Positions 47,693-53,544 of a DNA stretch of 64,000 nt are shown here, piece by piece. The notes under the pieces were generated by a model. That model saw only the letters and a list, made by a program, of their open reading frames with translations. It ran no database searches and was not told the DNA's origin. The stretch comes from Hypanus sabinus (lineage: Eukaryota). The stretch is taken from contig NC_082709.1 of assembly GCF_030144855.1 (NCBI RefSeq), positions 38,564,001 to 38,628,000 on the forward strand. The letters run 5' to 3'. Every line of letters starts with the position of its first letter. Position 1 is the first letter of the stretch. The position numbers were made by a program, and so were the translations under genes.

Positions 47693-47798
47693 TCAGATTG
47701 CACCACAAGACTTCTGGAAATACTTAGTACATTCAATGTACGATGGAAGATTTCCAACATCAAATCGGCCACATACGTGATGGACAAACACTGGTTTC
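47693..47798 (-). CDS. Nucleotidyltransferase coding exon 8 (KPVFVHHVCGRFDVGNLPSYIECTKYFQKSCGAI*)
   Basis: attgcag| acceptor; TGA at 47695-47693. Confidence 0.9.
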
Positions 47799-50700: not shown

Positions 50701-53544
50701 TTGGTAGCAGGTGAAGAATCATGACTGGGTATAAAAGTAGCGTCCATCAAAGGCTCTGTCTTTGCAAGCAAGGATGGATCGTGGCTCACCCCTTTGTGCC
50801 AAAATTTGTGAGAGAATTGTTAGTCAGTTCAAAAGGAACATTTCCCAATGCAAGATGGCAGAGTATTTAGGTCTTTCAACATCTACAGTACATATTATTG
50901 TGAAAAGATTCAGAGAATTCAGAGACATCTCAGTGCATAAAGGGCAAGGTCGGAAACCACTGTTGAATGCACGTGATCTTCGAGCCCTCAGGCCGCACTG
51001 CCTAAGAAACCATCATGCTACTGTGACAATCATAGCCACCTGGGCTCAGGAGTACTTCGGAAAACCATTGTCACTTAACACAGTACATCGCTGCATCCAG
51101 AAATGCAACTTGAAACTGTATTACGCAAGGAGGAAGCCATACATCAACTCTATACAGAAACACCGGCAAGTTCTCTGGGCCCGAGCTCATCTCAGATGGA
51201 CCGAAAGACTGGAACCGTGTGCTGTGGTCAGATGAGTCCACATTTCAGCTAGTTTTTGTAAAAAAACAGGCGTCGAGTTCTCCGTGCCAAAGATGAAAAT
51301 GATCATCCTGATTGTTATCAGCGAAAGGTGCAAAACCCAGCATCTGTGATGGTATGGGGGTGTATCAGTGCCCACGGCATGGGTGAGTTGCATGTATGTG
51401 AAGGTACCATTGACTCTGAGGTGTATATTAGGATTTTAGAGAGACATATGTTGCCATCAAGGCGACATCTCTTCCCAGGACGTCCATGCTTATTTCAGCA
51501 GGACAAGGCTAGACCACATTCTGCACGGCTTTGTACACATAGAGTGCGTGTGCTTGACTGGCCTGCTGCCAGTCCAGATCTATCTCCTATTGAAAATGTA
51601 TGGCGCATCATGAAGAGGAGAATCAGACAACGGAGACCACAGACTGTTGAACAGCTGAAGTCTTATATCAAGCAAGAATGGACAAAATTTCCAATTGCAA
51701 ATCTACTACAATTAGTATCCTCAGTTCCAAAATGATTAAAAAGTGTTATTAAAAGGAAAGGTGATGTAACACAATGGTAAGCATGCCTCTGTCCCAACTT
51801 TTGTTGAGTGTGTTATAGCCATCAAATTCTAAATTTGTATATGTTTACAAAATACAATTAAGTTGGTCAGTAAAACTATTGAAAATCTTTTCTTTGTACT
51901 TTTGACAGTTAAATAAAGGTTTACCTGAATTACCATCACAGATTTTTGTTTTTATTGCATTTTGGAAAATATCCCAACTTTTCTAGAAATGGGGTTTGTA
52001 GATACTGGCAGGAAGTTCTAGCATTTAGAAACAGATCAAAGACATCAATAAATCAGCTGTGTATCAATCTTAATTATAACCTAATCTATACCTGTAGATC
52101 TGTTACAACCTTCTAATGTTCTCTCTAAGCATTACCTGAATACTAATAGTAAAAAAGAGAAACAAATGAATAACTGCATTTACCATTCATGAATAAAGTA
52201 ATTTTATCCCTATCATAAATAGTTACTTACTGAACAATTATTTTTCACTTTAACATTGGAATTAAAAAGAAACAATCAGTTGAAGCTTATCTGTATCCAA
52301 ATTGTAATTACCATTGTGATGCAGTACTGTATTTTTGAAAGTTATCAATTTCAAATCATTGATTGAAAATCCTGGATATAGCAGTGAATACCCACCTCAT
52401 TGCTTGTTGTTCCATCATTTAGGACTGTGACTAGTTGGAACACCTTTGCCCAATCTTCAAATTTTGCATAATAGAGATCATTAGTCTGCAAAGATCATTG
52501 GCAACCAGTGACAAGATGCAAGGATAATATTTTTACTTATTCAATAGGTTACACAATTAGAAAGAAAATTCTGATTGACCCAGATTATAAATGTAAACAT
52601 TGAAAATACATTTAATTTTGCAACAAATGATTTGTGCAAACCAAAAAAGAGAAACTTTTGGAGTTATTTTCTTCCACTTCAGAACTGTTACTTTTTTTCT
52701 GTTTCAGTTGTCCACCACTTCTCTGTGGGAAGTTATTGAATTTGCATTCAACCCCTTTCTGAAATTACAATAATTCAGAGCATATATATGTTGTCACCTC
52801 CAGTTATTTTACAATTAACCTGTATCTGTAACTCCCAAATCTGCTATTCATAACCGTTTTGTTTTAGTTCTTCAAACTCTCCACAAAACTCTCTTTAGCT
52901 TTCTCTGCTCAAAGGAGATTAATGTCATTTTTCCAACCTTCCTTGATTTTTTTAAAGTTTGGTCCAAGATGGAAATTTATTAAGATGAGGCCTATTTTGT
53001 ATAAACCTTACTTTGTAATCTATTCATCTTAATTATAGTTGTCCTTTCAACATTTTACCACCTTTGAAGGCTTTCTATGCCCACAGGCTTCATGTTGCTA
53101 CACTTTCCAGTATTGTACATTTCATTTATATTGCCTTTTCTGTTTGTAACAATGTGCTCAGTTTCTGCCATAAACAATTATCAAAAGTTTTGACATCCAT
53201 ATCATGCTTTTTTTTACTATATTTCCAAGTTTTGTGTCATCTGCAAATGTTGAAATTATGCATTAGGTAGTCAGCTCATTATTTTAGCTGAACTCTTCTA
53301 GTCTGAAAAGATAATTTTTTTTCAGGAAAATAAAATCAGTATGTAGACATACAATAACATAAACTGCGTCGATGAACTTGATCGTATTTATCGCCGTCAT
53401 CCAATGACTGATGAGTGGTTGATCTCCTACTGGTAAAAGGGGCTTAGGGATGCCATAGAGATGCTTGAAATCTCCACTATTATCATTCTGCAGATCACGA
53501 TTGAGTCTTGTGCCGTAGCCAGCAGCTAGAATAATAGCCTTCAT
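47693..53544 (-). CDS. Uncharacterised stand-alone sugar-1-phosphate nucleotidyltransferase (NTP_transferase / RmlA-GMPP-like fold), 269 aa, complement(join(47693..47798,47871..47929,48468..48536,48761..48858,48937..49052,49729..49808,52396..52485,53353..53544))
   Basis: Eight GT-AG exons (192+90+80+116+98+69+59+106=810 nt) splice in phase with no internal stop. Family motifs are present: LAAGYGTRL, PKPLLPV, LGAIACL, IGGDTLF, KFGILE, FKEKP and RFDVG. Confidence 0.92.
47871..47929 (-). CDS. Nucleotidyltransferase coding exon 7 (NSPLEERDAPGKFLLWLYT)
   Basis: ttcattag| acceptor and |gtaata donor, 59 nt. Confidence 0.88.
48468..48536 (-). CDS. Nucleotidyltransferase coding exon 6 (CPCFYIYSKNTVPLIAKFLQEKQ)
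   Basis: cttccag| acceptor and |gtaagt donor, 69 nt. Confidence 0.9.
48761..48858 (-). CDS. Nucleotidyltransferase coding exon 5 (TTKFGILEINEKLQVTGFKEKP...SRNA)
   Basis: ctcctcag| acceptor and |gtaaga donor, 98 nt; follows a 78-nt intron. Confidence 0.9.
48937..49052 (-). CDS. Nucleotidyltransferase coding exon 4 (DTLFYEDF...SYPCKDE)
   Basis: ttttatcag| acceptor and |gtcaat donor, 116 nt. Confidence 0.88.
49729..49808 (-). CDS. Nucleotidyltransferase coding exon 3 (KRLGAIACLQLVITQFNIDDHILVIG)
   Basis: ctttttag| acceptor and |gtaagc donor, 80 nt. Confidence 0.9.
50414..51998 (+). mobile_element. Complete but inactivated IR/DR-type Tc1 transposon (1585 bp)
   Basis: TA at 50412-50413 and 51999-52000; TIRs of about 213 bp (50414-50626 and 51787-51998), each with two AAAAGTTGGGA direct repeats. 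Transposase 50774-51780 has WSDES, FQQD and SPDLSPIE motifs, a frameshift near 51210, a deletion and a premature TGA. Confidence 0.95.
52396..52485 (-). CDS. Nucleotidyltransferase coding exon 2 (TNDLYYAKFEDWAKVFQLVTVLNDGTTSNE)
   Basis: ctttgcag| acceptor and |gtgggt donor, 90 nt. Confidence 0.9.
53353..53544 (-). CDS. Nucleotidyltransferase coding exon 1 (MKAIILAAGYGTRL...DAVYVI)
   Basis: 64 codons ending at a |gtatgt donor; tandem ccag/cag acceptor upstream at about 53563-53568. Confidence 0.92.

Follow-up and report, generated by a model that had tools for sequence, protein, structure and literature searches.

A stingray orthologue of teleost zgc:136439 as a candidate pyrophosphorylase for glucuronic acid recycling

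In plants, UDP-sugar pyrophosphorylase (USP) converts glucuronate 1-phosphate (GlcA-1-P) and UTP to UDP-glucuronate (UDP-GlcA) (PMC3938481). Zebrafish GKUP (glucuronokinase with putative uridyl pyrophosphorylase) acts as a glucuronate kinase and forms almost no UDP-GlcA: it had no pyrophosphorylase activity in standard assays, and a trace of UDP-GlcA was seen after 70 hours (Gangl et al. 2014, PMC3938481). The authors pointed out that a kinase with no pyrophosphorylase to follow it would merely waste energy, and they suggested an unidentified protein partner or cofactor (PMC3938481). No other GlcA-1-P consumer is known in fish. GKUP is reported to be absent from mammals. Our literature searches on gkup and on glucuronate-1-phosphate uridylyltransferase returned only the 2014 paper, with no follow-up of its finding, and a seabass paper on structural variants that names gkup in passing. 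Here we analyze a stretch of 64,000 nucleotides from the stingray Hypanus sabinus (contig NC_082709.1, positions 38,564,001 to 38,628,000; below, the window, numbered from its first letter), in which a gene lies on the minus strand at 47693-53544. A preliminary description, made from the letters alone, had suggested that this gene encodes the missing pyrophosphorylase, as the active paralogue or partner of GKUP. We find that its product is most likely a stand-alone sugar-1-phosphate nucleotidyltransferase with the GalU/RmlA fold, and that, as a putative enzyme, it is the strongest candidate now at hand for the final, still missing reaction of the glucuronic acid recycling pathway of zebrafish.

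The stretch 47693-53544 is a real, intact, spliced gene. It runs from an ATG at 53544 to a TGA at 47693-47695, bounds that coincide with those proposed earlier, and its 8 exons, separated by introns that are all GT-AG, give a spliced coding sequence of 810 nt and a protein of 269 aa, with no frameshift or internal stop anywhere in the coding sequence. An open reading frame (ORF) scan of the window had yielded minus-strand stretches with recognizable nucleotidyltransferase pieces; the model was then built with full-length relatives as tblastn guides and with splice sites read directly from the sequence, and the window has no N runs. The match to the teleost orthologue (E 1e-128, ~60% identity), together with that of exon 1 alone (E 1e-24), places the model far beyond chance. 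The coding exons are as follows.

53353..53544, minus strand: exon 1, residues 1-64, with the start codon, the GYGTRL loop, a eukaryote-specific insert, and PKPLLP with the catalytic Lys34 (ORF; GTATGT donor; tblastn to orthologues, E 1e-24; Pfam NTP_transf_3 and NTP_transferase)
52396..52485, minus strand: exon 2, residues 65-94, TNDLYYAKFEDW...NDGTTSNE (AG acceptor and GTGGGT donor; tblastn with P0006, P0053, and P0066)
49729..49808, minus strand: exon 3, residues 95-121, KRLGAIACLQL...VIGG (splice sites; tblastn, 56-70% identity to fish orthologues)
48937..49052, minus strand: exon 4, starting with the DTLF of the GGDTLF block and so with the metal-binding Asp122 (splice sites; tblastn)
48761..48858, minus strand: exon 5, TTKFGILE...KEKPSSTETTSRNA, with the EKP motif (splice sites; Pfam NTP_transferase; tblastn)
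48468..48536, minus strand: exon 6, CPCFYIYSKNTVPLIAKFLQEKQ (splice sites; tblastn)
47871..47929, minus strand: exon 7, NSPLEERDAPGKFLLWLYT(R), with Asp223 (tblastn with P0053, P0025, and P0112; splice sites)
47693..47798, minus strand: exon 8, KPVFVHHVCGRFDVGNLPSYIECTKYFQKSCGAI and the TGA stop, with the second metal-binding residue, Asp248 (ORF; AG acceptor; tblastn)

The spliced protein carries GYGTRL (9-14), a long insert followed by PKPLLP (33-38), ITNDLYYAKFEDW, NDGTTSNEKRLGA (87-99), GGDTLF (120-125), EKP (180-182), and GRFDVG (245-250). Thus, as had been claimed, it keeps both GYGTRL and the catalytic lysine, and indeed all hallmarks of the GalU/RmlA type (Pfam PF00483) are present: G9-Y-G-T-R13, K34, D122, D248, and E180-K181-P182. 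Single stingray exons score 20-27 bits against Pfam, at or near the cut-offs, and full-length orthologues carry PF00483 and PF12804. In RmlA and GalU, the equivalents of Arg13 and Lys34 bind nucleotide phosphates, and those of Asp122 and Asp248 bind magnesium. By homology to these enzymes, the glycine-rich loop G9-Y-G-T-R13 together with Lys34 would hold a nucleoside triphosphate, probably UTP; Asp122 and Asp248 would hold Mg2+; and Lys181 of the EKP motif would hold the phosphate of the sugar-1-phosphate. That phosphate would attack the alpha-phosphate, yielding a nucleoside diphosphate (NDP)-sugar and pyrophosphate.

Structure prediction points the same way. An AlphaFold2 model of the moray-eel orthologue P0229, which stands in for the stingray protein itself at ~60% identity, was built from 54 sequences of the clade, called clade B below, to which both belong; it predicts a Rossmann-like alpha/beta fold with a pLDDT of 95.8 and a pTM of 0.93, and with the insert at 97-98. 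Its best solved neighbors are bacterial GalU and RmlA (TM 0.70-0.75, 18-23% identity, Foldseek E 1e-17), and the nearest reviewed UniProt models are of the same kinds of enzyme. A search of the PDB with the family profile ranks UDP-glucose pyrophosphorylases first. No NCBIfam equivalog came near its cut-off for this family, and among NCBIfam, Swiss-Prot structures, and PDB sequences no characterized protein was closer than ~24% identity. With solved neighbors this distant and no near equivalog, the family is a distinct branch of a well-known fold. From the motifs, we consider it probable that the stingray protein is an active NDP-sugar pyrophosphorylase; that it is both active and orthologous to zgc:136439 is likely.

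The orthology itself is plain: the gene is the cartilaginous-fish orthologue of teleost zgc:136439, as identity, tree position, synteny, and exon junctions all indicate. Over its full length the model is 60-62% identical to teleost zgc:136439 proteins (E 1e-128), and in a careful maximum-likelihood tree it is their sister with support of 99/96, a place outside all teleosts that agrees with a non-teleost fish. Junctions 64/65, 159/160, and 192/193 are common to the stingray gene and zgc:136439 of Betta splendens. In Betta, zgc:136439 stands tail-to-tail with an Asn_synthase-domain gene (ASNSD1), with ferroportin next; the matching anchor in the window is the following.

35862..37307, plus strand: large coding exon of ASNSD1 (Pfam GATase_7 and Asn_synthase), convergent with the transferase gene

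When exon 1 was searched against 1.84 billion representative proteins, no more than 314 relatives came up at E 0.001 or better, which marks the N-terminus and its long insert as particular to a small family. The named full-length matches are fish "zgc:136439" proteins or records with conflicting automatic names; the orthologues are variously called mannose-1-phosphate guanylyl-, glucose-1-phosphate adenylyl-, or thymidylyltransferase, and a 276-aa record of this type from Pimephales promelas is labeled "glucuronokinase with putative uridyl pyrophosphorylase." More than 100 fish species have an annotated orthologue. We know of no human counterpart. In our literature searches zgc:136439 was given no function, and the gene was named only in a goldfish array table, where a hypothalamus expressed sequence tag annotated zgc:136439 is marked "no homolog" in human. 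The teleost orthologue is thus annotated but unstudied, and the gene is conserved from choanoflagellates to fishes.

The likeness to GKUP that the preliminary description pointed out holds when the sequences are aligned. Zebrafish GKUP (NP_001107088.2, P0542; the protein of Gangl et al.) starts MICILLVAGHGTVLETQIKNDVSGLYAHLTGVPKALLP: the long insert before the Pro-Lys pair is there, the arginine of the glycine-rich loop is replaced by valine (GHGTV), and the lysine is kept. The same domain has VTNADKYKHYERW, NDGSTTLDDRLGA, and AGDML, and the VTN..Y...W, NDG...RLGA, and GD blocks are similar to those of the stingray protein. More generally, vertebrate GKUP N-domains in our alignment of fetched sequences read GHGT followed by Val or Leu, against GYGTR in the stingray protein. 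An insert of 11 residues between the glycine-rich loop and the catalytic lysine is common to the two. It is missing from the closest prokaryotic relatives (Omnitrophota, Planctomycetota, and DPANN archaea), although the family blocks are present there. The eukaryotic proteins thus have the insert in common as a derived character. According to Gangl et al., the GKUP N-domain is without a further homologue in zebrafish (PMC3938481), a statement that zgc:136439 appears to contradict.

In both quick and careful trees with a prokaryotic outgroup, the eukaryotic sequences are united with support of 100/100 and divide into two clades. Clade A (100/96) contains only domains fused N-terminally to glucuronokinase, among them those of animal and choanoflagellate GKUP, one from the haptophyte Chrysochromulina, and several environmental or transcriptome sequences. 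Clade B (96/92) contains stand-alone proteins, including the product of the stingray gene, plus several fusions of a different kind. Within it the nearest company of the stingray gene consists of stand-alone proteins from animals and choanoflagellates, such as those of Capitella and Hartaetosiga; the stand-alone protein of Oikopleura lies elsewhere in clade B, and that of a crayfish, identified by name only, is not in the tree. A single clade of holozoan stand-alone proteins and holozoan GKUP domains was rejected by 183.6 log-likelihood units in an approximately unbiased (AU) test (p-AU 2e-52); the group was chosen after the tree had been seen, which weakens the formal p-value but not the effect size. 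Clades A and B are therefore old paralogues and not the outcome of a recent animal duplication. Thus, the expectation that the stingray protein would group with GKUP N-domains holds in part: it belongs to the paralogue family nearest to GKUP, in a sister clade that lies outside the GKUP clade itself.

The two clades differ sharply at catalytic positions. Column counts were made over 80 non-redundant domains in stingray numbering (clade B, n = 50; prokaryotes, n = 9; clade A, n = 20).

G11: clade B 50/50, prokaryotes 9/9, clade A 6/20
R13: clade B 50/50, prokaryotes 9/9, clade A 7/20
R96: clade B 49/50, prokaryotes 9/9, clade A 4/20
D223: clade B 50/50, prokaryotes 9/9, clade A 0/20
D248: clade B 48/50, prokaryotes 9/9, clade A 0/20

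By comparison, K34, D122, and E180-K181-P182 hardly vary within any of the three sets; like the five positions above, each is present in at least 48 of 50 clade-B sequences (most in 49-50) and in all 9 prokaryotic relatives. The stingray protein has every one of these residues. The asymmetry between the stingray protein and the GKUP N-domain is thus larger than the single lost arginine first noted, since five residues are mostly gone from clade A. Clade A accordingly looks like a putative ligand-binding domain that is poorly catalytic or non-catalytic, and the losses match the near-lack of pyrophosphorylase activity that Gangl et al. found for the zebrafish protein. The domain is not decaying: between zebrafish and sea cucumber it is 66% identical, as conserved as the kinase domain, and the stand-alone protein is 47-50% identical between fish and invertebrates. 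In the sequences compared, the GKUP N-domain has therefore lost five otherwise near-invariant residues and yet is under strong constraint.

What links clade B to glucuronate is a set of protist proteins (P0141, P0279, P0280, P0285, and P0287) in which clade-B domains with GYG[ST]RL and RFDIG are fused to a bona fide glucuronokinase. The kinase portion of these proteins shares 45-50% identity with plant glucuronokinases, and within clade B the fusions make up one well-supported subclade (100/92). Such an arrangement amounts to a classic fusion, or Rosetta-stone, link, joining an apparently active clade-B member to glucuronate phosphorylation. Co-presence with gkup, proposed earlier as a check, is also seen: GKUP and zgc:136439 are both annotated in at least 30 fish species, and GKUP and the stand-alone gene occur together in sturgeon, Fundulus, tunicates, echinoderms, and choanoflagellates. 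On this evidence GlcA-1-P made by the GKUP kinase would be the single best candidate for the physiological substrate of the stingray protein, a plausible choice, though at well below even odds. As far as the searched literature shows, the idea of a UDP-GlcA role for a zgc:136439-type protein is new; it is also reasonable, on circumstantial evidence.

Several observations weigh against this assignment, some of them against the activity on which it depends. The fold model is that of an orthologue, and literature searches found no assay of any clade-B member. All 23 glucuronokinase-fused domains, from both clades, have Asp102 and Arg164, as do many other members. The animal stand-alone proteins have Cys102 and Tyr, Phe, or Val at 164, the latter as in the prokaryotic relatives and GalU. 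The animal stand-alone branch may accordingly have moved to another sugar, although the association of Asp102 and Arg164 with kinase fusion is weak because no more than two independent lineages of fusions underlie it. In a further clade-B member, which the tree joins to the stand-alone protein of Oikopleura (99/93), the fusion partner is a GalE-type UDP-glucose 4-epimerase, an arrangement that points to neutral UDP-hexoses as possible products. No cartilaginous-fish GKUP is found among the best 120 relatives of sturgeon GKUP (down to 76% identity), a set from which Xenopus, a known carrier, is likewise missing. The possibility of a split GKUP, with a glucuronokinase beside the transferase gene, was tried and dropped: three fusions that contain the kinase, used as tblastn queries, gave no such gene anywhere in the 64-kb window, and neither the gene nor the window has a GHMP kinase match. 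Prokaryotic neighborhoods were also considered as a clue to the sugar and set aside as uninformative for glucuronate, since they consist of housekeeping genes. Across the 80 prokaryotic relatives (L001-L080) there is a conserved operon of phosphotransferase system (PTS) enzyme I, the transferase, S-adenosylmethionine (SAM) synthetase, S-adenosylhomocysteine (AdoHcy) hydrolase, and phosphofructokinase; no GHMP kinase occurs in these neighborhoods, and a few archaeal relatives adjoin UDP-glucose dehydrogenase or GalE-like genes. Thus, the idea of an active paralogue of GKUP stands as regards one eukaryote-only family, canonical motifs, protist fusions, and co-presence, but the protein lies outside the GKUP clade and differs at positions 102 and 164.

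Some observations stand beside these. Residues 102 (in exon 3) and 164 (in exon 5) form a possible specificity switch. Canonical clade-B domains in P0112 (Patiria miniata XP_038049403.1), P0134, and P0064 are fused to other partners; the partners seen in the clade are an aldo-keto reductase (in the starfish), a GalE-type epimerase, and, judged by eye only, a DJ-1/ThiJ-like domain, and they may point to the sugars of different subclades. In Omnitrophota and Planctomycetota the run of genes is CofD-like protein, PTS enzyme I, transferase, SAM synthetase, AdoHcy hydrolase, and phosphofructokinase, an unusual housekeeping setting for an enzyme of sugar nucleotides. A bacterial (Planctomycetota) cluster of transferase-GHMP-kinase fusions is present in the ESM Atlas.

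The alternative that survives best is that the stingray protein, as an active pyrophosphorylase with no tie to GKUP, uses a different substrate, such as glucose-, galactose-, or some other neutral or amino sugar-1-phosphate. We regard this as quite possible, though at less than even odds, and a neutral hexose-1-phosphate is about as likely a substrate as GlcA-1-P. The KYGILE and RFDVG motifs of the stand-alone proteins are like those of bacterial GalU and unlike the RRGIVE of the kinase-fused domains, and no solved structures are nearer than those of GalU enzymes. (A uronate pocket marked by Arg246, which lies two residues ahead of Asp248, had been considered and was dropped, as bacterial GalU has the same R-F-D-x-G.) The GalE-type fusion agrees with such a substrate, and the archaeal relatives beside UDP-glucose dehydrogenase and GalE-like genes would fit UDP-glucose synthesis. 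However, the common sugars are already served in vertebrates by UGP2, UAP1, GMPPB, and FPGT, whereas GlcA-1-P is the only fish sugar-1-phosphate known to lack a consuming enzyme. In RmlA-type enzymes the Asn of the GGDN block contacts the sugar. This Asn is Thr in all eukaryotic clade-B members, so their pocket is not a plain glucose pocket.

A more elaborate proposal is that the stingray protein is the UDP-GlcA pyrophosphorylase of a fish salvage pathway and is physically paired with GKUP, whose N-domain would be a non-catalytic, ligand-sensing subunit. Clade A keeps the ligand-contacting K34, NDG, G98, D122, and EKP but has lost R13, D223, and D248, and it is conserved to the level of its kinase domain (zebrafish and sea cucumber share 66% identity, whereas stand-alone proteins of fish and invertebrates share 47-50%), which would suit a domain under constraint for a role other than catalysis. 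A partner of this kind would answer to the protein cofactor proposed by Gangl et al. (PMC3938481) and would have a precedent in GMPPA, which is itself non-catalytic, binds GDP-mannose, and interacts with its paralogue GMPPB (PMC11228364); the fusion of canonical clade-B domains to glucuronokinase in protists is also in keeping with it. Nevertheless, the two clades split before Holozoa (AU p 2e-52) and hence are not a recent subfunctionalized pair, positions 102 and 164 differ, and the best 120 matches to sturgeon GKUP include no cartilaginous-fish GKUP, the carrier Xenopus being missing likewise. We consider the pairing in full to be unlikely. Put as a wider model, non-amniote animals would complete UDP-GlcA salvage with two gene products: the kinase half of GKUP would make GlcA-1-P, the stand-alone zgc:136439 protein would turn it into UDP-GlcA, and the degenerate but highly conserved GKUP N-domain would sense the UDP-sugar and might dock the stand-alone enzyme, a pair of the GMPPA/GMPPB kind that would be older than animals. 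This model is doubtful.

Finally, it is very unlikely that the stingray protein is a regulatory or structural pseudoenzyme, as the N-terminal domain of FAP182 appears to be, or that the stingray copy is an unexpressed relic: the family does have at least two apparently non-catalytic offshoots, clade A and FAP182, but here the catalytic residues are all intact, the frame is open over 8 exons, cartilaginous and bony fishes agree in synteny and in the placement of introns, and orthologues are annotated in more than 100 fish species. As for FAP182, a microtubule inner protein of Chlamydomonas (PDB 6u42 chain 7H, also 8glv), its residues 5-159 match the family profile at E 2.7e-14, and the match spans the family-specific insert with a degenerate glycine-rich loop. 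The published discussion of FAP182 concerns only its PIERCE-like C-terminus (PMC10973386). After clade A, its N-terminal domain may represent a second branch of the transferase family that became a pseudoenzyme.

Intron 2 of the transferase gene holds one further feature.

50407..52005, plus strand: decayed Tc1/mariner transposon, antisense to the transferase gene, with HTH_Tnp_Tc3_2 and DDE_3 on two ORF pieces

Its transposase is broken over two frames, and its terminal inverted repeats of ~220 nt are 88-96% complementary. The element has no part in the function of the transferase gene.

The value of a candidate UDP-GlcA pyrophosphorylase is that it is concrete and clonable, and names a gene for the step left open by the 2014 GKUP study. 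If the assignment is true, it would explain the residual glycosaminoglycan of zebrafish ugdh (jekyll) mutants, and the use of zebrafish as a model of human proteoglycan disorders would need adjusting. It would also provide a second pseudoenzyme-enzyme pair in nucleotide-sugar metabolism. Should the glucuronate role prove wrong, what is left is a conserved orphan enzyme with contradictory automatic names in the databases.

It is useful to set the stingray protein beside the systems that it most resembles. The closest is teleost zgc:136439, with ~60% identity, a length of 274 aa against 269, the ASNSD1 neighbor, the intron positions, and all motifs in common; the stingray C-terminal tail is shorter, and position 164 is Phe instead of Tyr. 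The N-domain of zebrafish GKUP (DrUP) is 34-37% identical over 247 residues (E 1e-37 to 1e-44) and has the same insert and the VTN...W, NDG...RLGA, GD, and EKP blocks. Predicted structures of the fish GKUP and zgc:136439 clusters in the ESM Atlas superpose with a TM of 0.88 over 262 residues. In contrast to GKUP, the stingray protein is stand-alone, lies in the sister clade, and keeps the G11, R13, R96, D223, and D248 that are mostly lost there. Bacterial GalU and RmlA share the fold (TM 0.70-0.75) and the catalytic signature, and the KYG and RFDxG motifs are GalU-like. However, identity to these enzymes is 18-23%, the stingray family has its eukaryote-specific insert after GTRL, GGDN there is GGDT here, and the ACPCFY block is distinctive. 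Plant USP performs the same step as that proposed for the stingray protein and belongs to an unrelated family of larger UGPase-type enzymes; to our knowledge it does not occur in animals. Lastly, GMPPA and GMPPB belong to the same superfamily and set the precedent of a degenerate, product-sensing paralogue that controls an active one, a likeness by analogy only; both GKUP and the stingray protein are without the C-terminal left-handed beta-helix domain.

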